From Anthoceros angustus (lineage: Eukaryota; Plantae; Anthocerotophyta): a stretch of 64,000 nucleotides of DNA. The notes beneath the pieces are model-generated. The model worked only from the letters and a program-made list of their open reading frames with translations, was not told where the DNA came from and did no database searches. The DNA is taken from positions 248,001-312,000 of the forward strand of contig VJWM01000126.1 in assembly GCA_010909165.1 (NCBI GenBank), given 5' to 3'. The number at the start of each line of letters is the position of its first letter. The stretch's first letter is position 1. Both the position numbers and the translations under genes were made by a program. Below, piece by piece: positions 22,051-64,000 of this stretch.

Positions 22051-23480
22051 TGAATGATGAAGCAAAGCACCGTGTTCTTGATGCTTGCGACTTGATCGCC
22101 CGCATTGTATTGGTGGACGCAGGGTCTGCAATGTGGCCGGAATGCATTTGCATTTAAGTTCGCCCGCATGCCCGCACGCCCGATTGATGTTGAGGTTACG
22201 CCGATAGTGGACATCAATACTAGCGGTGTGATGTGCCACAATCGGATAGGAATGGCGTAAAGGCCACCCTACATGGCTGTTTTGAGCGTGGGATAGCAGT
22301 TATGCACCTAGTCGGCATTTTAGTTTACCCGACTTGTGGGTATGTGGCCTCGTTAAATATGCATTGGCTTCTCACTTTTTTTGAATGTGGATTGTTGCCA
22401 TGTAAGTGGTTGCGGCGTTGTTAATCAATGTATAATTGTATGGTAAGCGTTGGAGACACATTGTTGGAACAATGCCTCTGTCGTTTTCATTCGGGCACCG
22501 CGTTTCAACCACATGTCCGTGACCCTACTGGGTGCAATTAGATTAGCGGTGATCGAGATGGGTGCAATTAGACTAGCGCGATGGCCGGTAATCTAATCGC
22601 ACCCATCTCGGCCACAAGCTACCCTGCCGACGTCGGGCGAAAGGCCGTGGGAGTGGGATCGTGTCCAATCGTGAAGACTCGGATGGATAGACCCAACCCC
22701 AAGGGATTTTTGGACGATTGTCCTCATGTACAATGATCGACAATCGGCAGCCATGCTGAACCCATCACGCCTCGGTATCGCATGGTCGACATCCATGTCC
22801 GGAGGCACATAATCGAACTGACATGACGGGTTTAGCTTTGGCGCCTCTCCGTCCATGGTATGATATCGGGATTTAATTCCGATCGTCCTTGGTTCGTACA
22901 TGGCTGGACTTTGTATCGCACCGTTTCTCATCGCGGCCAGCAGTGGGCTGTTTGTGCAACCCATTGATTCCGAACACATGCAGATAGTGCAGCACAGTCA
23001 TCTTTGTTCTCGGATTGCCTTTTCATCAAAGTTAGATCGAACATACTTGAGACCACCACGCCCAACTGGCTCCCAGCACTTGTGTAGGACAAACTCCAAA
23101 CCCAAAAACTTGAATGCAATCTGCGGGCCGAAGCCTCCTCCGCGCAAGCACGCCACCGACACCGACCTTCTCGGCCCGCCATTGTCCGACCGCCAATGGA
23201 ACCGTGCACATCGCACAAGAACCGAGCCCCAACATGGAACCCTAATCGATGGCTCATCCCGGTAAGTCCGGTAGAGATTCGCGTTCACCGGTCGGTGGGA
23301 AAGTTTTCCCGGAGGTATGTCAACTAAATGACGTTTTTGCTTCGCGTTGTACTTTGAGTATTTTAAAGGCCACCCAAGATGAGTCGGGGAACCCATCATA
23401 TGCCATATGACGCGAGTTATAACGCAAAGCACCCAACGTTGTAATGCTCTCGTCATAAAAACACCCGATGTGTAGTAGTG

Positions 23481-24270
23481 CCCCATCTTAGAACCCAGGC
23501 CCTTAGCGAACCACCGTATTGCCTGCAGCTCCGAATGAGGACCACTACGATCACGCAAGCTGTGAAACCTCTCAACATACGCTTGCAAGGTTTCCTTCCT
23601 TTCTCTTTGCAACCTCTCAAGTTTGGACAACACATAACCCTCCACGTCAATTCCCCTAAACCTCTCACAGAAGGCGTTTTTCAATTCTTCAAAGGTGGCT
23701 GGGGGTGTGGCTGACTTGAGGTACTCACGCCTGTACCACTTTGCTGGACCTCCCAAGAACTCCATAGAAACGATTGAATCTTGTGCATCGCCACTCGGTT
23801 TGCAAATGTCATGCTCAAAACGCTCAACAAAGGATCCTCATACCTTCCCTCTCCATACAATGGGTAAGGTTGCTTGGTGGTGACCGCCACCGCCGCGTGT
23901 GGACATGACTATCGTGGTGATTCGGTAACCATGGTGGATTGAACGTGTCTGCGGAAGTTGATTTTGATACAGCGCACACACGGAAGAGAGGTCAGAAGAC
24001 AAGATTGGTCCAAGGTCCCTTGGCCGTGGTACCTCGTCCAAAACCAGAGATTGGGGATCTTGCTCCAACAGGATCGGACCCCCGCTCCCTGGTTGATTCC
24101 GTGCCTCCTTTCCTCCTCCAGCAAGTACGTCCTCCAATTGGACCCTCCTCAACTCCCGGTTCGCAACCCTCTTCAATCTTTCCAGTGCTTGGCGCTGTTG
24201 CTTCGCTTGAGCCTTTCCTTCCCGACTTGACTCTGGACCCTCCCGCTCAACCCGTGGCATCCATCTACCA
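23481..24270 (-). pseudogene. gag 5' part (Retrotrans_gag-like) of the Athila-like element
   Basis: GPAKWYRREYLKSATPPATFEELKNAFCERF..LERLQRERKETLQAYVERFHSL..WFAKGL, lying just inside the PBS. Confidence 0.85.
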
Positions 24271-47986: not shown

Positions 47987-48741
47987 AGGAAGAAGATGCT
48001 GTCTAGAGATGTTTGTAGAAAGATGATTGCTGACCCACCCTTGGATTTGTGTGATTTTGGAAACTCGTTGCCGCTTCGCGGACTAGAGCTCATGTGCTGG
48101 CAACATACATGCATGGTTGCCATCTTAGGTCTTTGTGGATACTATCATTGTAACATGTGTGTGCCCTGCATCAGTGACCCAGGCATCTGACCTAGACCCT
48201 AAGGCCAGGGGCTTGCCTATCACGTTAAGGAAGAGGAGGACGATGGAAATGGAAGTAGACTTGGAATGTAGGTCATGGAGTGAAGGGCGGTTGAAATAGA
48301 AGGGATGTGGAAAAGGAAGGGAGTGGTAGCGGAGGTGGGCTATTCGGGGATATCAGCGTTCGATAAATAAGTCCCCTTGAAGATCTTGAGGCAGCCCAGC
48401 CCAGCCCAGCCCAGCATTCTCAGTCACACACCACGCGTCTGACAGAGGTTGGCCCGGGGGTTTGCCTTGTGCGCTGTCCCTCCTGGACGTACATTCAATC
48501 AACAAGGAAGAAGGTGGTGCTGGCTTGGCTCCCTCCTGCCCCCGGAATGGCATGGTCACGGCGGGTGTAATGCTGGTGGGTGGGTGCCCACTCTGAGGCT
48601 GAGACGCATCCTCCGATGGCCGACCCCGGCGGCCAAGGCAACAGCAGCAGCAGTAGCAGCAGCACCAGGAGCAGCAGCAGAGAGGCCGCCATGACCCAGC
48701 CCCTGGCCGGCAGGTAGCCAGGCCCGCATTGGGAACGCTTG

Positions 48742-50988
48742 ATGGAGGCGCCGGTGCACGATGCCGTGCTCTCGTGGCCGCGCCCGGCTTCCAAGCTCGC
48801 CCTCCGCGGCCCCGCCCGCATGCTCGCCTTCGACTCCAGACTGGGCGTGGGGGTGGCCGTGGGGAAGAAGGTGAAATGGCGCATGGTGTGGTCCTGCGAC
48901 GTCCGCGCCTCGCCCCACAGCAATGGGTTGTGCGGGAATTGCAGGAAAGGGCACCAGCAGCAGCAGTGCGGGAGATCGCGCCTTGTGGGTCGTCCGGGGA
49001 ATGGCTGGATCGTGTGTGCGGCAGCGGCTGGGGACTGCGATGGTGCGGCAAACGGCGCCCTGGGGGGGCACAGGCATGGGGTTAGGGGAGGGCATGGCCA
49101 TGGGGACGGCAAGGGTTTGGTGGGTCACGTGACGGCGTGGTGGGGCGTGGCCAGCGGCGTGCTCCCGTACGGAGTGTGGTGGAAGGTGGGGGAGCTCGGG
49201 GGGGAGAGGGATGAGGAGGCGGAGCGGAAGCGGATCAGCCTGGGGCTGGCCATGAAGAGGTTGTGGGTTTTCATCGCCCCGGACAAGGTGCTGATTGCAA
49301 CCGCGTTTGCGTCTCTCGTGGTGGCGGCGTTGTCGGAGATCTCCATCCCGCACTTCGTGGCGGCCACCATCTTCTCGGCCCAGAGCGGGTCGGGGGCGCA
49401 GTTCAGGAGGAACGCGCAGCTGCTGGCTCTGCTGAGCTGCACCTACGGGCTCTTCAGCGGGCTGCGGGGGGCGTGCTTCGGGATTGCGAACCAGATCCTG
49501 GTGAGGAGGATTCGGGAGAGGCTGTACAGCACGCTCTTCAGCCAGGAGATTGCGTTCTTCGACACGGAGGCCGTGGGGTCGCTCACCAGCCGGCTGGGGT
49601 CCGACTGCCAGCAGGTGTCGAGGATCATCGGGAACGACCTTAACATTATGTTCAGGAACGCGCTTCAGGGGATCGGGTCGCTGGTGTACCTCACCAGCCT
49701 GTCGTGGCAGCTGGCGCTGTCCACCTTCAGCATCTGTCTGCTCATGTGGTCTTTCATGATGTTCTACGGGCATTACCAGAGGAATGCGGCCAAGGCGGCC
49801 CAGGACACCATGGCTTCCGCCAACGAGGTTGCAGAGGAGGCCTTGTCTCTGGCTAGGGTTGTGAGGACGTTCGGGACGGAGCGGGAGGAGCTGGAGAGGT
49901 ACAGCAAGTGGTCGCAGAAGCTGGAGGATATTAATCTGCGGCAGAACGTGGCTTATGGGCTGTGGACGTGGAGCTCCAACACCTTGTACAATGCCACGCA
50001 GGTGGTGGCGTTGGTGCTGGGAGGAGGGTTTGTGATGAAGGGGTTCATCAATGCTGAGCAGCTGACGAAGTTCATTTTGTATTCGGAATGGGTGGTGCAT
50101 TCGACTTGGTGGGTGGGGAATCACTGGGCTTCGTTGATGCAGGCTATTGGTTCTAGTGAGAAGGTTTTTCAGCTCATGGATTTGCCTCCTTGTAAGGAGC
50201 AGAGCAATGCTGGGGAGCGGCTGCCGGATATGAAGGGGTGCATTCAGTTCAAGGATGTGTCGTTCAGGTATCCTGCTCGGCCTCAGGTGCCTGTCCTGAG
50301 GAATGTGAACTTCACCATATATCCTGGGGAGCTGGTGGCGGTTGTGGGCCTGAGTGGGAGCGGGAAGAGCACCCTGATTGGGCTGCTGCTGCATCACTAC
50401 GAGCCGCACAACGGGCAGATTCTCATCGACGGGGTGCCTCTCAGTGCTCTGGACGTCAAGTGGTTTAGGAAGCAGCTGGGGGTGGTTAGTCAGGAGCCTC
50501 GGCTGTTCAGCATGGACATCGCTAACAACATAACTTATGGGTGTGACAGAGCTGCTGTCACGCAAGTAGATATCGAGAGAGCTGCGAAGCTGGCAAACGC
50601 CCATGATTTTATACAGGCATTGCCGGATGGATATAGGACTGTAGTGGACAACGTCCGGTTGAGTGGCGGACAGAAGCAGCGGATCGCTATTGCCAGGGCT
50701 CTGATTCGGGAGCCTACAATTTTGATTCTGGATGAAGCCACCAGCGCCCTCGACTCCGAGAGCGAGCACCTCGTCCAGAAAGCCCTAGATGTGGCCATGA
50801 GAGGGAGCGGGAAGCGCAAGCGGACGGTGCTTGTCATCGCCCACAGGCTCTCCACCATCAGAGCTGCCGATCGGATCATCGTCATGCACCAGGGCCAGGT
50901 GGTGGAGATGGGCAGCCACGATGACCTCATCTCCTTGGATGGCCAGTATGCCAGACTCACGCAGAGGCAGCTCACTTCCCTGCCTTAG
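48742..50988 (+). CDS. ABCB26: Half-size ABC transporter B family member 26 (TAP1-like, probably chloroplastic); single exon
   Basis: Uninterrupted ORF with a transit-peptide-like N-terminus. TMD LSEISIPHF..SRLGSDCQQVSRIIGNDLN..AEQLTKFILYSEW. Walker A GLSGSGKST, signature LSGGQKQR, Walker B LILDEATSALD, H-loop IAHRL. First ATG at 48742. Confidence 0.92.
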   Translation: MEAPVHDAVLSWPRPASKLALRGPARMLAFDSRLGVGVAVGKKVKWRMVWSCDVRASPHSNGLCGNCRKGHQQQQCGRSRLVGRPGNGWIVCAAAAGDCDGAANGALGGHRHGVRGGHGHGDGKGLVGHVTAWWGVASGVLPYGVWWKVGELGGERDEEAERKRISLGLAMKRLWVFIAPDKVLIATAFASLVVAALSEISIPHFVAATIFSAQSGSGAQFRRNAQLLALLSCTYGLFSGLRGACFGIANQILVRRIRERLYSTLFSQEIAFFDTEAVGSLTSRLGSDCQQVSRIIGNDLNIMFRNALQGIGSLVYLTSLSWQLALSTFSICLLMWSFMMFYGHYQRNAAKAAQDTMASANEVAEEALSLARVVRTFGTEREELERYSKWSQKLEDINLRQNVAYGLWTWSSNTLYNATQVVALVLGGGFVMKGFINAEQLTKFILYSEWVVHSTWWVGNHWASLMQAIGSSEKVFQLMDLPPCKEQSNAGERLPDMKGCIQFKDVSFRYPARPQVPVLRNVNFTIYPGELVAVVGLSGSGKSTLIGLLLHHYEPHNGQILIDGVPLSALDVKWFRKQLGVVSQEPRLFSMDIANNITYGCDRAAVTQVDIERAAKLANAHDFIQALPDGYRTVVDNVRLSGGQKQRIAIARALIREPTILILDEATSALDSESEHLVQKALDVAMRGSGKRKRTVLVIAHRLSTIRAADRIIVMHQGQVVEMGSHDDLISLDGQYARLTQRQLTSLP

Positions 50989-53569: not shown

Positions 53570-56500
53570 ATGGTGTCCTTGGAGGAGAAGTGGAACTCGC
53601 CGGAATGGAGAAGCGGTAGGACTCTACGGAGTGAGAATGTGCAGGAAAATACTAGAGGGAAGGGGAGAAAGAAGGGAGCAGAACAGCACCAGAGGCTACC
53701 AATTGACGACCACCGGGTGAAGATTTTGGACCATATCTGCAGGCATCGAGTTACGTTTATCCAGGTACATTTGTGAGTATGCGGTGCATTGTGCATTGTG
53801 CATTGGTTTGCATCACTTTGTTTCAGTTCCTGTGTCGCATCAATTACAGCACTTGAGTGGGCAATGCTCCTCTTTGTGTGGCTGCAGGGAGACCCTGGGT
53901 GCGGGAAGAGCACGGCTGTGCCACAATTTCTACTGGATGATACTCGCCGTCGTGTGGGAGAAGTGAAGGTTGTGGTTACTCAACCACGGCGTATTGCAGC
54001 CATATCCTTGGCCAAACGGGTTGCCCAAATGAGAAATCAGAATGTAGGAGGTGAAGTTGGGTACTGTGTTTCCAACGATCACGTAACAGGTGGAGAGCAC
54101 ACCAGGCTTTTGTACGTGACTAGTGGGTATTTGCTGGAGGTAAGTGCCCTTTTGGACCTGTATGCTGGGCTGCTGTGGACTCGGTCTACAGCTTGCAGAC
54201 TCCATTAATATTGTTCTCCCAAACAAACGTCAGAAGAGGAATCTGTATTGTAGCAGCAGCTAGAACTGGCAGCTGGTGGCTGAATGCCAGCCTTGTTGGT
54301 CATGTGCAGTGGCTTAGTTGTCAGTGGGACAAGACGAGGCCTTTACAAGAATGCATGTCTCATCTGATACTGGATGAGGTGCATGAGGGAACCCCTCAGC
54401 AGGATTTGCTGATGCTCCTTGTGAAAAAACTCTTACAGTACGGCCAAGGAGCCTCCTACAATGGCTTCCCCAAGATCATCATAATGTCAGCGACACTGCA
54501 AGTGAAGCCTTTCCGTGACTACTTCGCTGCCCTCTCTCAGCAGTTCAGCATCAGCAAGAGAGGCTCCGATGGACCAACCATCCCGGCTTGCATGGACGAC
54601 ACCTTGCATGTTGGAGCGAATAGATTTTCTGTGGACATAGTTTTTCTGGAGGAGATTTTGCAAGCCATCCCGACCCTTAGTACTGGAGGGAAGGAGATTG
54701 TACGAAGGCTCCTCAAATTCCCAGCCAACGGTGAGTCCTTTCCCAATTTTGCATACCCTCTTGTGGTGCACCTTGTGAGCCAGACTGCAAAGGTGGGGGA
54801 TGCAGTGCTAGTGTTTGTGCCTGGCCTGGTCGACATTGTTCGGCTGCAAGAGGAATTCAGACGCCAGTCAAGTGGAGCAGGAGAAAAACGTTTGGAAACG
54901 TTCTTGTTGCATTCCCTGCTTGAGAAAGAAGAGCAGGCGGCGGTGCTGCAGCCACCGTCTCCAGGTATTACCAGAGTATCATGTCACTAGACACACTTCT
55001 TCTCAAACGAGGGAGTGGTAAGCATCTGACCAAGGCTTTGGAACGGAACCTCTTGCAGGAGCTGCCAAAGTAGTGATTGCCACAGACATTGCTGAGAGCA
55101 GCATCACCATCCCAGGAGTCAGATTCGTGATTGACATGGGAATGCAGAAGACCATGTCTTTCGACAGGTCTGTCGGGGTTGAGAGGCTGTCCTGCTCCTG
55201 GTGCACAAAAGCTTCTGCAACGCAAAGGGCTGGGAGGGTTGGTCGTCTCTACCCAGGCACAGTGATTCGCCTGTACACCCGAGAAAAGTATGATCATTTC
55301 CAGGCAAGCTGCTTTTCCTATAACCACCTGATTGTAAGTGCTGAAGGTGGTGACACGAGGGACTCTGGTCTTTCCATATCTACCTTGAACTGGTCCTTGC
55401 AAGCATGTTTTTGTTTTCCTATCTGACACCAGTTTCCAGGACTATGCTGTGTCCAAAATTCGAGAAGAAGAGGTTGAATACGCCTTGCTCAAGCTCTTGA
55501 GCAACTTTACCGCGTTTGGCCCACCTACACAGCTTATTCAAGAAACGATAAACCCTCCTGAGCCAACGCTGGTAGTCGATGCTATGAGAGCTCTGAGAAG
55601 TGCAGGAGCCTTGATTTATTCCGATCAGAACAACTTCTATGATGCTAAGCTTACAACAATTGGACGCTTGGCCAAATGCCTGGCAGGCGATGTGAAGGTG
55701 GCCAAGCTTGTGATGAATGGTCTGGTCCTGAAATGCTCACCTGACTGTATTGTAATGGCAGCAACATCGGAAACTGAGAAGGAGGACATATTCAATCGCT
55801 ATCAGATCCACCAGAGCCAAAGGTAACACTCATATTGAATCCGACCTGAAACCAGCTCACAGTCCTATGACAACCGTAGATCAATCTTACATTTAAGGCA
55901 CTGTTTTACTGTGCACAGTGATCCCCTGAAGCACCAACAAAATGTGTGTGACTCCTTCAAGATTAGAAAGAGGTTTGACAAGGGCCATTATAGTGAGCTC
56001 CTAATGTACCGCCAAGTATATATCGAGGGTCAGCGAAATCAATTCAGCAGAAAATGGATGGAGCAGAACCACCTAAGCTTTGCTCGCTTCCAACTATTCA
56101 CTTGGAGGATTGCAAAATATGCCAGAAACGTTTCAGAATTCCTTCAGGGCCACAATTTGTCAGAAGGAATGAGTTTCGAGCTACAGAAGCTCAGACTCCT
56201 TGCGCAACATGGGAAGGGCTACACGTTGGATTCATTTATATTCCGAGAGGACTTGACAATGGTTAAGCTTGCCATTACTGCAGCATTTATAGACTGCCTG
56301 GTTATCGGGGATGTTGCTAACAGTAGGCAAGCAGTGAATGAGCTGAAAGAACTAGAGAAAGCAGGACTTCCTCCCTCCTCCTCATTCAGGTTGAATGGAC
56401 TCGATTCAACTCCGGTGAATGTTGAGGAGCTAGGCAAAGTGCTTCAGGTATGCTATGTCAGATCCAAGCCACAGAGTGTTAGAGCGTAGTCACCTGCCAC

Positions 56501-59500
56501 CAAAGTACTGGACATGATGATGTATCACCTGCTTGACTCGCACGAAAATGACTGTGTTGTTGGACCTGTTCAGGTGATAGGACCCGTTGCTAAGATTGTA
56601 CGAAGTCCAACTCAAAATGGAGCAGCTCTAATCCAATGTTACGACACAGGAAGTCACAGAAACTGTGCTGAGTTTGTCGTCAAAGACCTTCCCGAAAGTG
56701 GCCTGTTATTGTTTCATATGCCGAGAGCAGTCACCTCCAAACGCACAACGATAGTGCATCTTGCTGGGCAAGACGGATGCAGCGAAAGACACATAGGCCG
56801 ACCCTCTAAAAGCAGGCAAATTAGGTGGTCTACCACACTCAATGGACACACCGTCAAGGTGAAGTTTGACAGCAGCAGCATACAGGAGCCAGCGTTCGAG
56901 ATGAGGACAAGGGGAGAGGTAAACTTTCATCTTGGTGTGGCTCGCCAACTCTTCGGGACAACTCTAAAGGACAAAGTAATCGCACACTATGTAACCATCT
57001 TGCCATCTCAAAACCTGTTCTCAGTCCTGGCTATATTGCTATGTTGGCCTCCAGGGGAACATGGTTTAGAGCTTCGAATGGATACCCGTAGCCAGAGGGT
57101 CTACTGTGTCCGGATAGGGCCAAGACTGAACCTTTCCCTGGCACCTAGGTACCTCATCTTAAAGCAACTTGATCTTATTGAAGAAGCTCGCATCAAAATG
57201 CAGAGAGTGATGGCGGGTGCACCGGTAGAGGGAAATCTTGAGATGGACATAATGAAGATCCTCATGTCTGATTCAAATCAGAAGCATCAACCCGTAATGG
57301 CCCCACAACTAGGGCCTTGGGTTGGGTATCTCTTTGTGAGAAGTTCCCAAGAATGCAAGGTGAAGATTTCAATGGACGGTGCAAAGCACTTCAACAGTGT
57401 CCACCAAGGAAAAGCGGGTAAAGCTGCCCAGCAATCAGTAAAATCGGTAGCACCCCTACATGTGCCTTCTGTGGAGAGTATGTCAACCAAATCCAAGAAG
57501 AACACTTTTGAACAGAAAAGGGTTTATATTCCTAAGGGCACTGGGGCAGGAACCAACCGATTGCAGCAAAACGTTAAGGAGATACTTGCTGACATATCTT
57601 CAGACGAAGTAGTCCAGAGTTCTGGACAGTCCGTGACTGGAGCACAAAGTCCTCTGCTTATCCTTTGTATAGATGAATCAAACTACGATGCAACCCAGAA
57701 AAAAGTCCCAGTCCTTGACTCACTACCCACGGAAGACATGGCTAGCATGCCCCATGAGTGTTCTAGTGCAGCAACTGACCGACTGCAGCAAGGAGTTAAG
57801 GAAGCACTTGCTGATGTGTCTTTAGATGAAGTAGTCGAAAGTTCTGAACATTCCGTTAGTGAAGCATGTAAACCACTTCTGCCCGTGGAAGACAAGGCCA
57901 TCATACCCAATGAGTCATGGGACAAGGCTACCATATCGAATGACCTACGCGAGATTCTAAATACAGTTACACCCGACATTCAGACCCTGCACACTGCTTT
58001 CCAGCTGGTTGATCCAAGTCTCGGCCTGCAGATGGTGCATAATTGGACTTCAGGGGAGCGGTCGCATAATCAAAAGTTTTTCTCTCTATTAAGGGAGTTG
58101 GTCCTGATGTACCAATCAAGACAGGGGAAATCATTGGACTGCGATGTTCCGTCTGTTGTAGAGATCGTGCATAAGGAGAAACGAAAGCTTGTCAACAACA
58201 AACAGCAGGTACAGAATCGTTCATCATGATGTCTGTGAATGACCAGCCCTGGTATGCAAACTGTCCAGCTGACTAACATTGTTTGAAAGTGCAGATGCAA
58301 GTCGAAACATGGTACCACTCACTATGCAATCCGGACAAATCAGAGATGATGCCATTGACCACTTGGGGCACCGCTCCAGGTGAAACAGTGCAAGTTGACA
58401 AGCAAGAAGCTCAGTCATTCATCAGGCAACCAAATGCCACTACAATCAGCAAACAGCTTTCACTCACTCTACATCAGAGAAGCTTTCTTCTGAAGAGGTT
58501 GAAAAGTCAGCCTGTTCCTCAGGTGGACATTTCTGTTCCTAATGTGGCATCCAAAAGCAGCTTAGTGATGGTGTTCGGACCACCCTTGCAAGTGGAGAAG
58601 GCTTTGCAGTGGATCAGGTCTACGGTTCTTGAGCACAAGCCAGGAAAATGGGCAAGTAACAAGACATATTTGGACTCCCAAGACAGGCACCAGAGGATTC
58701 ATTTTGTGGCGATAAGTCCCTCTCGAGACAGGCTGACTGCATTAAAAGAATATTCAGAGTGTGTTCTACAGCTGGCTCAAGGAGCTAGTTGCCCTTTGGA
58801 TGTCAAAGCTCCATCCCTGTACCTTCCTGAAATCTCAAGGGACTTTGATGATGCTCTGCAGAAGGTGAACCCGGGGACAAAAGTGGAGATGCAGGGGAGG
58901 CTCGGAAGGATAATTTTCAGCCATAGGGAAAGGGAGAAGGACTCTTTACCATATGACTTCAGTCAGCCACCAGACATCTTCATCCGTCTTTTGTCAGAAA
59001 GAAAAGTGAACAAGCAGCGGTTTGATGACACAATCGAAAGTCAGGAGTTTGGCTACCTAAGGGCAGCCCTCTCCGTTTGTCGCCCAAAAAGAATCTTCAG
59101 ACAACGGTCCGTCGTTCTGCTGGTGTCCAGTTTGCAGAGGCAATCCGAAGACGAAGGGGTGAGAAAGCTTACCATAGTTGAGTCTGACAGCCAACCAGGG
59201 AAACATATTTTGCAGTTTGTGCAACAAAGAGAAAGACTTGCAACAGCAGACATCGTTCGACTACATGCAGGAGCAGTACATGCAGACATACGAGTTTCTA
59301 TGACGGTACGTACTTACAGAAAGATTTCTCCAGTTTCCAGAAACGAGAGACTGCTTGTCCCTGCTTGATATAAACTCTGTTCCTTGATGTTGCAGACCAC
59401 AGTGCAGAAAGGAATGACGAAGGAAGACCAAGAATTTGTGAATGGTATCGAGAGAAGAGGTGCTGTGCTGTGGTTTCCACCTCTACCCTATGTAGTGCAC

Positions 59501-62500
59501 ACCCAAAGGCTAAAGGAAACGGAGGTATTTTTGTTTAATGAGTTGAAGGTCACTTTGGCTGTAGTCACCCAGGCACGTGGTGGAGGAGACTCATGGATCA
59601 AGAATGAGGTGGAGTTTGAGGCCGTGGATCCCAATGGAGATGGCTCCACTTTGTTTGTGTCACGTGGAAGTGTGGGAGAAAGAATGGAATTCCTCCTGAG
59701 AGATATCCAAAGCATGTGTACCGAGTTCTGCTTGAAATTTGATGAAACAATTACCAAAGACTTTGCTGGGAAACTGCTGTTGCACTGGAAGATGCAGTAT
59801 GGAAATATCCCACGGCTCCGCAAGCTGCTTGAACTTGGGTTGTCAAACCCAGAGGACAAGGGTGGTGACTCTGCTCATCAATTACCTGCACCACCGGTCA
59901 GTCAGGGTTATGAGCGCAACACTAACAATAGTAAGCTAGTTTGTGACCTTGTGGAGCACCTGCATCACTTTGATGATTGCATCACGGCCAGAGATGATGT
60001 TGCTACAACTGAATTGCTTATTGCAGTACTTCAAACACTTCATTCTATGAAATTCTTGCTTGCCAAGGGTGTACAGGAGAGGGCTTGGTTGTTGATAACA
60101 AGTAGTGAACTGCAACCAAAAGTTGCCCTCCGGTACGCCTGTCTCGTTCCAAGAGATTGCTATTCCAAACATTATTGGGAGGAGGTTCTGTGTCCTTACC
60201 TGTGGCAAATGGAGCTTGAGCAGCAGCATGAGGAAGCTGACGAGCTAATCTCATTTCTTGGCCTTCAGAAAAAGACGATGAAAGCAGTTCTGAATGACCT
60301 GGCACTTGGCCCCAGCTTGAATAACATTTTCTGCTCCCTCCGACGGTTGATACACACTAACAATGCTCATCAGTTCATGGTAGTTTTCACACACACTATA
60401 GAACAACAGGTGGCAATCCCTCCACGGCATTTGGAGGGAAATATAAAAAAGGTTCTCTGTCATCATGAAGCAAGAGCTGCTGAATTTGTTCTACTATGCT
60501 CAGAGTGGTTTCTGCAAACTTCAGAAGGCAAAGGAGACATACATCACAAGTCAACTCTTGTGTGGTTGATTGAAGTGATCAAAACGCTGAACGTCCCAAT
60601 CAGTGAGGAGTGCCGTTTGCTTGCATTGTCGCAACTGATGAAATTCGCACCAGTGGGGATGGAAGCTCAAGAAATTGAGGACAAGATATTCAGTACATAT
60701 CAAGTGGACGAAGTTCTATACAGAAACGAGCATTATCAAAGAATTCTGAAGAGCCTTCCACTCTGTCATACACATAAAGAGGTATATTAAGAAACACATC
60801 AAGTAGCACATGAGGTCAATATTTCAGGGACCAAATCCCTCACTAAGACTTGCCTTGTTGTACACACTGTAGGAGTTGGTACGCAGGGGCCTTGCACAGA
60901 GACAATGCCATATGTTCAAGACTTTACATCCTGGACATCGAGTCAAAGCAAGCTGCCTTATTCCTGGTGTAAATAGAGGTGGAGACCGATTGATAGGAAG
61001 CCCTGGAATCCTGATTCCTGCTCGAGACCCTACAGGTCAAATAACTGGTGCCCAGATCAAAGTTGACAAAGTCAATAGTGGGAAGTATATTTGGTGGAGC
61101 AGTAAGAACGAAGGAGGGAGGGGGCCCCGAGTGCGTGAAAGTTTGCCTTTGTTCTGCTGCATTCCAGAAGGACATGATTGTGCAGTTATTGGACTTTGTG
61201 AAGGTAAAACATCGTTGTCTCTATTGACAGTGAGCTGTCCCTGCCCAACCTTTGGTTAGTCGTCGAAGATCTTTGAGAGACAACTGTTGAACAGAGGCTG
61301 CACCTCAGTAAAATCAGTATTGGGGGTTTACCTGGATTCTTTTCGCTGCTCCCAACCAAGCTTAGTAACACACCTGCTACATGCAATGCAGGAGGCCTTA
61401 AAGCACATGTTGCTGCAGCCTTGAGTGGACTGCCGATGATTGGAGCTTCTGGAGCTGCATTCCCACAATCAAGGAGCTTACTTGAGACATACCTGGCAAT
61501 GCTAAATCCCACACAGATACTCTTCTTTCCAGATGCAGGCTCAACAAACAATGACCAGGCAAGTTCCAATGCCCTTCATCTCTATCGTATATTGCTTTTC
61601 AGTGTGAGCTTGTAAGAAGAATGTGCCTTTCGTTCACAGGTAACACGGAGCTACTTCCACACATTTCGACTACTTCGTGAATGGAATTATGATTTTCTTG
61701 TTGCATGGTGGGGCCAAGTGAACAAGGAAGATCACCTTGATATCGATGACTTTCTCTGCACAAGTGAGTCTGCAGAGGAAATTCCTTTATTGTCAGAGCG
61801 CCAATTTTGGCAGCTCATCAATCCAGACGTCAAAACCAAGTTAGACGAAGAATTTTCTGAGTTGAGCAAGCCTTGGGAAGTTCATGTTCAGCCCCAAGCT
61901 ATAAATCTGGAGGAAACATTCACAGACACTGATGACATAAAAATCACAAGAAACCCGGCCTCGGTAGGGTGCGTGCATACTCAGAAGTTCTTGATATCAA
62001 TCCCCAAAGCCAGGATGATGAGGATGCCAAACTCACCAAATGGATATGTAACACCTTCTTCTGTGAAAACTTTCTCCATAGAGGCCTTTATGGTGTTTGT
62101 GAACGATTTGCAAGAAACAGATCTACTGATAGAGTGGTTGGTGCAAGAGGAGAAGGATGACAACGCTATCATAGGGCTGGACTGTGAGCATGACCCTGAT
62201 GGTGCACTCAGACTCATACAGTTATCTGTTCACAGTCGATGTCTGCTTATTCGCATACCTTGCTTGACATCTAGGCACCTGTTCCAAGCTCCTATCAGGT
62301 ACACAATGGGGACATGTTCTGCCAGGTTCCATGTTGGATTAGGTTGCTGCAAATGACGTACCTACTTCTGGAAGTGGCTTGCAGGCTCTCAAGACTCCTT
62401 GCATCTGTAACGTACATCAAAACTGGAGCGGAAGTCCACAAGGATGCCCTGGCTATCTTCCACACCCTGGGACTTGTGGTCAATGGATGCAAGAACGTAT

Positions 62501-64000
62501 CCCATGTGTATCGTAGTAACAATCTTACGAGTAGCATGTCAAAGATATTCAGGTGAGCAGCTAGCTTGTCGAGTACTTTCTCATTTTTCCCTGAATCCCC
62601 GCACGGTCACGTTGGGATGTAGAAAAGGGCAATCTCTGTCAAGTTTCTGCATATTGCTCTGTCCTGGACTTCAATGTTACGAGGAGAGGGACATTGAATA
62701 AACCTAACACAGCTTGAGGCAGGGACTTGTATGGCTGGGACTGGAAAAAGGAAAAGTCTGTAAGCTGCAGTCGTTGGGGCAGTGACTACCTATCACTAGA
62801 ACAGGTTTGTCCCAAGAACCTGGTGACCTGGTTTGGGCTCAAAGGGGTGGTCTACGTTAGCAAAAGCAACCTGCATGGGGCTGCTGCAACCGGTACTGGA
62901 TTAACTAGTGGAAAGTGCCTTGTCCAGATAAAGTACGCAGTCATTGATGCCTGGGCATCTCGCATGATATCACTTGAAGGAAGAGCTTCAGAGGAGGGTG
63001 CCATTCCTTTGGTATCCTTGCAAGATGTTCCCATGGAGGTGCTCGACATTTTTACAAGATCAATATCACACTCTGATGCTCTTAAGAAGGAAGAAACAGT
63101 AATCGAGGTCAGAGGGCAACATATTTTACTGGAAAGCATAACAGCATCAAGAAGTTTTTATCTGCTAGGCTTTCAGCTCCCTTCTGATTTAATCTATCAG
63201 AATTTGCTTGCTCAACACTCCTGCCAACTGTCTGCATGTGAGAATCCTCATACCCATGACTGAGGTGCTTGTGTGTAAACTGTGCATATCAGGGGGAGGG
63301 AAATATCATGGCGATTAGCTGTGGGACACTCCGACTGCAACAAACTAAGTTCCGGTCTAGAGTTCTTGGGATAAAGTCTTCAGTTGAGATTAATTTTAAA
63401 GATGGCCAGGAACCAGAAAAATATGCTGCCACAGCACGGACAGGGAAGACAGTCACCTTGCACCGAATATCAACTTCAGCACCTACTTCTGAAGCTGACA
63501 CAAAAAAATCAGGTACATGTCATTGAAACAAGCATTTTTACCTGCCTCGATGTTACAAGGGTGATAATACTAACAGTGGTTTACACGTTCACCCAGCAGG
63601 ACAGTTCCTGGATGTTGCTTCAATCAGCAGCATTGTTATCGACAACCGAAAACACGCTAACATGCAGAAAAAGAAATTGGACGAAGCTCTTTATGGCGTA
63701 CTTTGTGCACCAGCGAAGTGCCCAGCCCTCTTACTCCGTGCACTACAGTGTAGTAACATCCAGGCAGACAACGTCGTGCCCAATGAATGGCCCTCGAGGT
63801 TGATGGCACTACAGTACATCTCTGGTGCTCTGAACAACTCTCAATGTAAGGCTTGGGAACAGATCTTGACATCTCATGTCTCAGCTACTATTGGCCCACC
63901 AGGGACCGGAAAAACAAGGCTCATTGCAGCAGTCACCAAAGCATGGGATGAATTAGCGGATGAGGGGCAGGTTTTACTTTGCACCGCTTACCAAAATGTG
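53570..64000 (+). CDS. Giant multidomain nucleic-acid enzyme: DEAH helicase - RRM-like - KH-like - CYTH-like - helical - TOPRIM (CyRepA1-like) - DEDDy exonuclease - UPF1-like SF1 helicase; 3'-incomplete at window edge
   Basis: Phase-consistent exon model: 53570-53764, 53888-54139, 54310-54964, 55059-55303, 55440-55822, 55919-56447, 56574-58208, 58295-59305, 59396-60781, 60873-61203, 61392-61558, 61640-62298, 62385-62552, 62723-62804, 62928-63107, 63293-63512, 63600-64000 (8499 nt, no stops). Motifs: GDPGCGKST, TQPRRIAA, DEVHE, MSAT, ATDIAESSIT, QRAGRVGR; LDCE, KDA, YAVID; LNNSQ, GPPGTGKT, CTAYQNV. Confidence 0.85.

Follow-up and report, generated by a model that had tools for sequence, protein, structure and literature searches.

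An intron-rich nuclear gene of Anthoceros angustus joining two helicase superfamilies to a DnaG-type primase-like domain and a DEDDy exonuclease: a candidate nucleic acid surveillance protein of non-seed land plants

Large helicase-nuclease fusions, among them WRN, DNA2, HELZ2, ZNFX1, and RecBCD, have a central place in genome maintenance and nucleic acid immunity. The motors and nucleases involved have well-known habits: DEAH/RHA helicases translocate 3'-5', UPF1-like helicases of superfamily 1B (SF1B) translocate 5'-3', and DEDDy enzymes take nucleotides off 3' ends. In bacterial primases, a zinc-binding domain is needed for template recognition, and the main known eukaryotic case of a DnaG-type primase domain is organellar Twinkle. 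Here, we describe a gene in a 64,000-nucleotide stretch of Anthoceros angustus DNA (assembly GCA_010909165.1, contig VJWM01000126.1, positions 248,001 to 312,000; hereafter “the window”) that brings both kinds of motor, a DEDDy exonuclease, and a primase-like domain together. Opposite-polarity motors of superfamily 2 (SF2) and SF1B sit in one chain and flank a WRN-type exonuclease and a primase domain predicted to be complete, of DnaG type, and akin to those of prokaryotic mobile elements, an architecture absent from the literature we searched. The domains are individually known, as are helicase-nuclease fusions, and orthologues are already public as hypothetical proteins; it is the combination that is undescribed. 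We tentatively read the product as a surveillance or processing machine for nucleic acids.

The gene runs from position 53570 to the end of the window on the forward strand. An in-frame stop sits 5' of the ATG at 53570, and 17 exons then join in phase into 8,499 nucleotides, or 2,833 stop-free codons, with the frame still open at 64000. This agrees with the initial annotation, made from the sequence without database searches, which had proposed 17 in-phase exons and about 2,830 codons running off the window. A search of public sequencing runs with the 10 kb stretch found an RNA-labeled run (X1, organism A) that contained 75% of the sampled words, whereas runs from the related organisms B and C contained 5-7%. 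Contigs of runs X1, X2, X7, and X12 were aligned to both halves of the region, and the joints were shifted onto splice dinucleotides within the tolerance reported by the aligner. Every one of the 16 junctions is present in RNA-derived contigs, 15 of them from the same organism; the first (53764/53888) was seen only in a 90-95% identical relative (run X2). Five joints of the initial model (58208/58295, 59305/59396, 60781/60873, 63107/63293, and 63512/63600) all lie in 100%-identical contigs of run X1. The splice sites had been called canonical, which is true of the GT-AG ends of 14 of the 16 introns but not of 55304-55439 and 61559-61639, both of which are GC-AG introns with RNA-contig support. 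This is a single nuclear, spliced, and expressed gene encoding a protein of ~3,200 residues, and the homologues suggest that the product extends ~400 residues past 64000.

None of the RNA contigs covers the gene from end to end. Contigs of run X1 break at 54965-55113, 57619-57679, and 60064/60065, and these breaks are bridged by contigs from organism B or C. Two other features of the read data should be recorded. In run X12 (organism C, labeled “RNA?”), a 5.8 kb contig over 58001-59454 retains the intron 58209-58294; it therefore represents genomic DNA or unspliced RNA, and this run cannot be used as splicing evidence. At 63266-63310 (intron 15), run X1 shows a depth spike of ~60 from a contig that matches ~45 nucleotides with unrelated flanks, probably a short repeat common to a more abundant transcript.

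When Pfam was run on stop-to-stop frames and on the exact exons, only Helicase_C and AAA_11/AAA_30 were returned, a poor yield because the introns split the domains. Single-exon sequence searches of the PDB were blank or marginal for the TOPRIM, triphosphate-tunnel (TTM), and DEDDy parts. Assignments were instead drawn from motifs in the spliced product, family profiles, and structures predicted on a 37%-identical liverwort homologue (mean pLDDT, the predicted local distance difference test, 53-55); all fold matches below refer to that homologue's models.

Between the two motors lies a domain first described as TOPRIM, which is modeled as a whole DnaG-type catalytic core of the DUF3854 kind and not as a minimal TOPRIM. 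In the window it carries the motifs GILIPARDPTG, KYIWWSS, CEGGLKA, FFPDAGS, and DIDD. By Atlas language-model features, the liverwort segment resembles the DUF3854, Toprim_2, and DNAG_N clusters, with scores of 0.95-0.97 and as many as 191 features in common (the best figure, 0.97, comes with 185). Foldseek against the PDB places DnaG RNA-polymerase domains at the top (probability 0.95-1.0, E-value only 5e-3), VIA gives Z scores of 8.8 and 8.2 over DnaG residues 115-400 and ranks Twinkle, T7 primase, and RecR next, and the Atlas shape search agrees with a DnaG-type core. There is also a direct relative (2.6e-12), a 372-residue metagenomic prokaryotic protein (P0016), which shares KYxWLSS, CEG, PxIGASG, PDAGS, and DID[DE] with the plant domain. 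Homology to DnaG/DUF3854 thus rests on embedding, fold, and this one metagenomic relative. The TOPRIM glutamate is kept (CEGG); the classical DxD is replaced by PDAG, with an invariant DIDD downstream, and P0016 has the same pattern. Because DxD is replaced, TOPRIM catalysis is predicted only.

Sequence models were less informative for this segment. Neither the Pfam Toprim and DUF3854 models nor PDB sequences matched it at E-values up to 10, the plant TOPRIM alignment had no match when scanned against bacterial genomes, and PHROGs gave no match to the primase-like part. The “Bagel” matches in the TOPRIM profile search were rejected as a beta-propeller repeat artefact. The Pfam model Zn_ribbon_DnaG had no match in any family member, and the segment directly upstream is an alpha-solenoid.

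The contig carrying P0016 encodes mobile-element-type genes of the helix-turn-helix (HTH) and Gp49 families, and P0016 itself has one relative, 86% identical, in a Beijerinckiaceae metagenome-assembled genome. These closest prokaryotic relatives (L001 4804-5922 and L005 4001-5101) lie on short contigs where HTH and Gp49-family (PF05973) genes adjoin them. As one of the contigs is binned to Beijerinckiaceae, a specifically cyanobacterial origin is not demonstrated. Cyanobacterial plasmid Rep proteins do couple DUF3854 with a helicase (PMC10079941). In addition, DUF3854-like sequences are reported among the inserted open reading frames (ORFs) of one fern plastome, and the match list of that paper includes an ORF of the liverwort Treubia (PMC6220310); plastome ORFs of this kind are a possible route of such domains into plant genomes.

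Downstream of the primase-like domain, the DEDDy exonuclease proposed at the outset has all four acidic residues and the tyrosine (D2444, E2446, D2503, Y2569, and D2573). The window motifs GLDCEH, HKDALAI, and YAVIDAW line up with the catalytic motifs in EXD2 and WRN, and the family profile finds the same two proteins in the PDB (EXD2 1.2e-12, WRN 2.4e-12). Pfam PF01612 matches the liverwort homologue at 1e-9, and the fold matches the WRN exonuclease with a Z score of 12.3. In the single-exon PDB searches, the window's exons reach only E 0.52.

The C-terminal motor enters the window far enough to be recognized as the UPF1-like SF1B helicase it was taken for. Exon 17 matches AAA_30 at 2.9e-8 and AAA_11 at 1.1e-6, and the homologue's model matches Upf1, Dna2, Sen1, SETX, ZNFX1, and Ighmbp2 at E ~1e-14 and Z 15-17; among reviewed proteins, ZGRF1 and DNA2, both DNA helicases, belong to the best matches by structure. 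Motifs II-VI and the second RecA domain fall past 64000; the homologues have DE[CS]SQ, GDPxQLPP, and AAA_12 at 7e-30. The preceding beta-barrel, previously listed as a separate feature, belongs to the same core: alignments to Sen1, UPF1, and ZNFX1 begin at model residue 276-282, at the barrel, which identifies it as the N-terminal barrel of a UPF1-like helicase. PADLOC returned the Mokosh anti-phage helicase MkoA (1.4e-51), its sole match and one that is generic to UPF1-like helicases.

At the other end of the protein, the DEAH/RHA helicase and its HA2-type region were likewise read correctly. Motifs I-VI are intact in the spliced product (GDPGCGKS, DEVH, SAT, TDIAESS, QRAGRVGR). The nearest solved relative of the family profile is Spindle-E (9.5e-97, profile positions 8-584 of 706), then DHX36 (4e-80), DHX29, and DHX9, and the Spindle-E and DHX36 alignments continue through the winged-helix/ratchet part. 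The PDB alignments stop short of the C-terminal OB-fold, and the next conserved domain has no PDB match.

This is not a lone protein. With exon 9 (462 residues) as query, HMMER found only seven matches among 1.84 billion cluster representatives, two of them very long, unnamed or hypothetical proteins from the liverwort Calypogeia fissa and the fern Ceratopteris richardii. BLASTP of the spliced model aligned collinearly with C. fissa CAM6098963.1 (residues 44-2731, 35-37% identity) and with C. richardii KAH7281971.1 (UniRef A0A8T2QFL9; 2,994 residues, collinear over 1-2833, 25-32% identity). A region-restricted search added two Adiantum proteins, one of 2,879 and one of 3,025 residues, as well as a full-length Calypogeia paralogue of 3,343 residues and a short one of 1,697. 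On an 18.5 kb Logan genomic contig lies a further gene that is ~50% identical, keeps the exon order, and has every catalytic motif. The liverwort and fern proteins are annotated only as hypothetical or “DNA2/NAM7 helicase-like.” With collinear relatives in a liverwort and in ferns, the architecture is conserved from bryophyte-grade plants to ferns, yet undescribed in the literature searched. The initial statement that no characterized protein has this combination still stands; what it lacked are the uncharacterized orthologues of the same architecture. Nothing relevant was found in the literature on the family accessions, DUF7903, or the domain combination, nor did the literature searched describe any intron-bearing gene, in an assembled plant genome, that includes a DUF3854/DnaG-type domain. 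The family is small and, as far as the searches reached, confined to non-seed land plants, with no member found in seed plants.

In Calypogeia, three paralogues (P0011, P0002, and P0012) lie on one 15.85 Mb contig. The two long forms are 82-92% identical over their aligned parts, and the short one has a low-complexity N-terminus followed by exactly TOPRIM-DEDDy-SF1B. P0011 has a duplicated N-terminal segment, which may be an annotation merge, and the P0002 gene model ends after the barrel.

In the fern orthologues (P0008, P0009, and P0010), DEAH motifs I, II, and VI are degenerate relative to window residues 66-430: DEVH has become LDRAD in Ceratopteris, which has also lost the context of the Walker A lysine, and LDDVD in Adiantum. 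Their ExoI and ExoIII catalytic residues are also replaced relative to window residues 2440-2575. The fern primase-like domain and all SF1B motifs stay conserved, and the primase-like segment is the best conserved of all: ferns and liverwort are 59% identical there, compared with 31% across the middle and C-terminal part of the protein. Judged from these alignments, the invariant core of the family is the primase-like domain plus the SF1B helicase, and the DEAH and exonuclease sites are lineage-variable.

Organism B, which is 90-95% identical, provides a further variant. Its contigs (runs X2 and X7) pass directly from 59674 to 62050; the ends are not splice sites, 8 bases are inserted between them, and no contig of this organism covers the interval. 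Three codons, in frame and at the domain boundaries, stand in for residues 1729-2399, which make up the alpha-solenoid and the primase-like domain. This looks like a clean genomic module deletion. Among 80 listed substitutions between organisms A and B, 25 are synonymous and 55 nonsynonymous (the random synonymous share is 0.225), giving a rough nonsynonymous-to-synonymous rate ratio (dN/dS) of ~0.6 from a partial difference list with orthology assumed.

Within the part of the protein that the window covers, each of the four enzymatic modules keeps its catalytic motifs in this organism, as read from its sequence. Our tentative preference is for a processive machine for nucleic acid surveillance or processing, with a role in genome defense or quality control. 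The 3'-5' DEAH motor and the 5'-3' SF1B motor would jointly engage a structured or duplex substrate and pass its strands on to two sites, the 3'-5' exonuclease and the metal-binding TOPRIM center, the latter of which may cleave them or prime on them. A scaffold for substrate binding would be made up of the KH-like, beta-rich, and solenoid parts. Defense or quality control is favored over housekeeping because of the patchy distribution, the tandem paralogues, the module loss, the lineage-specific inactivation, and the fast protein evolution. Its putative targets would be transposons, viruses, or aberrant nucleic acids.

Several observations weigh against this preference. The ferns lack the DEAH and exonuclease catalytic residues, so a scheme of two motors plus an exonuclease is not universal in the family. 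An invariant primase-like domain and SF1B helicase beside a dead fern DEAH helicase and exonuclease fit the anti-virus or anti-transposon sensor and degrader first proposed only loosely, and would equally allow a DNA-level primase-helicase. WRN and EXD2, the closest exonuclease relatives, are associated with DNA, as is the DnaG fold. PDAG and the downstream DIDD stand where a classical TOPRIM has DxD, the structure models come from a 37%-identical homologue at low mean confidence, and the dN/dS figure, taken from a partial difference list, may compare paralogues.

A bolder variant of the surveillance reading, and one to which we give little credence, would have the DnaG-type domain actively copy templates into RNA, as the polymerase of a surveillance complex in eukaryotes. 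Foreign or aberrant nucleic acid would be made single-stranded by the two helicases, the primase-like center would make short complementary RNAs, and the exonuclease would trim the products. The short RNAs could then seed silencing without canonical RNA-dependent RNA polymerases, and the degenerate tunnel-like domain could read 5' triphosphate ends. If true, eukaryotes would have a new kind of nucleic acid immune enzyme, with a domain taken over from a prokaryotic plasmid or phage at its center.

The same parts can be read at the level of DNA, as a primase-helicase-exonuclease descended from a plasmid or phage replication protein and working in replication restart, repair, or recombination, with the DEAH and KH parts as an added targeting module. 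This is the main rival reading and a serious one, although we consider it unlikely. In its favor are the conservation of the DnaG-like domain, the highest in the family, the short Calypogeia paralogue reduced to TOPRIM-DEDDy-SF1B, the plasmid Rep precedent, and the kinship with ZGRF1, DNA2, WRN, and EXD2. Set against these are the zinc-binding primase domain, which was not detected, the non-canonical DxD motif, and an N-terminal helicase whose nearest relatives (Spindle-E, DHX36, DHX29, and DHX9) are RNA helicases. An essential replication factor would not be expected to be absent from seed plants, within the reach of the searches, or to have lost its whole primase-like module in organism B.

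More doubtful still is a reading in which the gene is part of a large mobile element or virus-like replicon, or was domesticated from one only recently, and its product serves the element. A primase domain of prokaryotic mobile-element type, a patchy distribution with tandem paralogues, and retrotransposon remains within the window point that way. The gene nevertheless has 16 spliceosomal introns, with exon order kept in the ~50% identical relative, is collinear across bryophyte-grade plants and ferns, and adjoins an ordinary ABC-transporter gene; the searches run saw no second copy in the window, where a terminal-repeat search was not made. That two or more adjacent genes were merged, or that this is a decaying chimeric gene without function, is very improbable: the breaks among RNA contigs and the truncated Calypogeia P0002 model would suit it, but all junctions are supported, contigs of relatives close the gaps, gene models that cover the full length as one gene are available for Calypogeia (3,343 residues), Ceratopteris (2,994), and Adiantum (3,025), and the 2,833 codons hold no stop and keep their catalytic motifs. 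The conserved intron-rich structure, the ordinary neighbors, and the intact frames make both the mobile-element and the mis-joined or decaying readings less likely.

The coordinates of all features are collected in Table 1.

Table 1. Exons and domains of the gene, in window coordinates
Feature	Position	Strand	Residues	Basis
Exons 1-4	53570-53764, 53888-54139, 54310-54964, 55059-55303	+		RNA joints and splice dinucleotides
Exons 5-8	55440-55822, 55919-56447, 56574-58208, 58295-59305	+		RNA joints and splice dinucleotides
Exons 9-12	59396-60781, 60873-61203, 61392-61558, 61640-62298	+		RNA joints and splice dinucleotides
Exons 13-15	62385-62552, 62723-62804, 62928-63107	+		RNA joints and splice dinucleotides
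Exons 16-17	63293-63512, 63600-64000+	+		RNA joints and splice dinucleotides
DEAH/RHA helicase core	53702..55442	+	~45-450	Motifs, family profile
Winged-helix/ratchet (HA2-type) continuation	55443..56108	+		Spindle-E/DHX36 alignment to profile position ~584 of 706
Family-conserved domain (former “RRM-like” region)	56574..57329	+	754-1005	24 invariant columns
Linker, poorly conserved, with two copies of a 104-nucleotide (~35-residue) repeat	57541..57866	+		Copies 77% identical
KH type I-like fold	58439..58639	+	~1347-1413	Liverwort homologue's model
Beta-rich domain, intron 59306-59395 inside	58838..59665	+	~1480-1725	Conserved strands
Alpha-solenoid (HEAT/ARM-like)	59750..60739	+		All helical, pLDDT 70-88 (homologue's model)
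Predicted DnaG-type primase catalytic core/TOPRIM, DUF3854 kind, two introns inside	60894..61867	+	~2105-2339	Features, fold, relative
DEDDy 3'-5' exonuclease, WRN/EXD2/RNase D type	61958..62996	+	~2370-2589	Motifs, profile, fold
Beta-barrel, N-terminal barrel of UPF1/Sen1-type helicase cores	63090..63466	+		Structure alignment
Start of UPF1-like SF1B helicase, Walker A GPPGTGKT	63809..64000	+		Pfam

The middle of the protein, between the DEAH helicase and the primase-like domain, is where the first description needed most revision. An RRM-like domain had been placed in the region of residues 754-1005, and this finds no support: a family profile search of the PDB gave no match. The region is a well-conserved family domain, with 24 invariant columns across the liverwort, the ferns, and the window protein. 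The repeat linker that follows is real, its two copies (57541-57644 and 57763-57866) being 77% identical; a tandem-repeat search found no tandem array there. The KH-like proposal holds for the fold but not for the loop. The order beta-alpha-alpha-beta-beta-alpha matches PCBP2 KH3 (Z 8.7, root-mean-square deviation 1.7 Å over 67 residues) and the BICC1 KH domain (TM-score 0.68), the GXXG loop between the first two helices is lacking in the window and in every aligned relative, and Pfam KH_1 reaches an E-value of only 0.25 on the window exon.

The beta-rich domain had been called CYTH-like. The hallmark of CYTH proteins is an N-terminal ExExK motif with a role in metal coordination (PMC8233210). 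The family instead has the strands E-x-Q-x-[RK]-L-G and K-x-E-V-E (VEMQGRLG and KNEVEFE in the window), so that a conserved glutamine stands where ExExK has its second glutamate; the liverwort, with Q-x-Q, lacks the first glutamate too. The sequence EREK (residues 1510-1513), downstream of the E-x-Q strand in the window, is not conserved among relatives. No link to CYTH or Cet1 came from the PDB profile search, the Pfam scans, or a profile search of 5.8 billion proteins. Predicted secondary structure is beta-rich, model pLDDT there is below 50, and Atlas features reach 0.70 to mRNA_triPase clusters, which was rated a lead only. The CYTH label is not confirmed. The domain possibly derives from the triphosphate-tunnel fold; if so, it is probably not a classical triphosphatase. 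The helical region of about 270 residues that follows proved to be a confidently predicted alpha-solenoid, for which only generic repeat matches (Z ~8.5) were found.

As for the surroundings of the gene, an uninterrupted ORF of 749 codons at 48739-50988 (+) encodes an ABC transporter (ABC_membrane 1.7e-40, ABC_tran 7e-34). It lies 2.6 kb upstream, in a GC-rich stretch (62% GC). Farther away, ~30 kb from the gene, an ORF at 22998-23765 (-) carries a retrotransposon gag/Ty3 capsid domain (8.7e-10), consistent with the transposon sequence noted upstream at the start.

Variation within the family amounts to a set of natural experiments on the modules: ferns with a dead DEAH helicase and exonuclease, a liverwort paralogue that holds the core only, and a sister species in which the primase-like module has been excised in frame. 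Ceratopteris richardii is genetically tractable, and since the family includes it, function is directly testable.

How, then, does the protein compare with better known systems? The bacterial complexes RecBCD, AddAB, and AdnAB also combine opposite-polarity motors with a nuclease, which is an analogy of mechanism only: they are multi-subunit processors of DNA ends with PD-(D/E)XK nucleases, and homology extends only to the generic SF1 fold. HELZ2 has two SF1 helicases and an RNB nuclease, whereas the nuclease here is DEDDy. WRN and EXD2 have an exonuclease of the same class, and in WRN it is likewise fused to a helicase; that helicase, however, is a RecQ-type SF2 enzyme, in place of the DEAH SF2 and UPF1-like SF1B motors and the primase-like domain of the window protein.

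Spindle-E/TDRD9, DHX36, DHX29, and DHX9 match the N-terminal ~600 residues at 1e-97 to 1e-71, winged-helix/ratchet included. In contrast to these relatives, no Tudor domain, double-stranded RNA-binding domain, or G-quadruplex-specific motif was seen in the window protein, and its helicase is followed by ~2,600 residues of other enzymes. At the opposite end, the C-terminal helicase core with its barrel (Foldseek E-value 7e-15) is common to UPF1, Sen1/SETX, ZNFX1, MOV10/SDE3, ZGRF1, DNA2, and MkoA, none of which carries the DEAH, DnaG-like, or DEDDy domains.

With DnaG, Twinkle/T7 gp4, and the DUF3854 plasmid Rep proteins (CyRepA), the window protein shares what is modeled as the whole fold of the DnaG RNA-polymerase domain, the conserved EG glutamate, the acidic clusters, and physical linkage to a helicase. 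It differs from them in having no zinc-binding domain, EGGLK for EGxxD, PDAG for DxD, an SF1B partner in place of DnaB/SF3, and a nuclear gene with introns. Its true counterparts are the Calypogeia, Ceratopteris, and Adiantum (L7F22_062755 and GOP47_0030144) orthologues, which have the same domain order and are collinear over nearly the whole length; the window protein has intact DEAH motifs I, II, and VI and intact ExoI/ExoIII sites, all of which have degenerated in the ferns.

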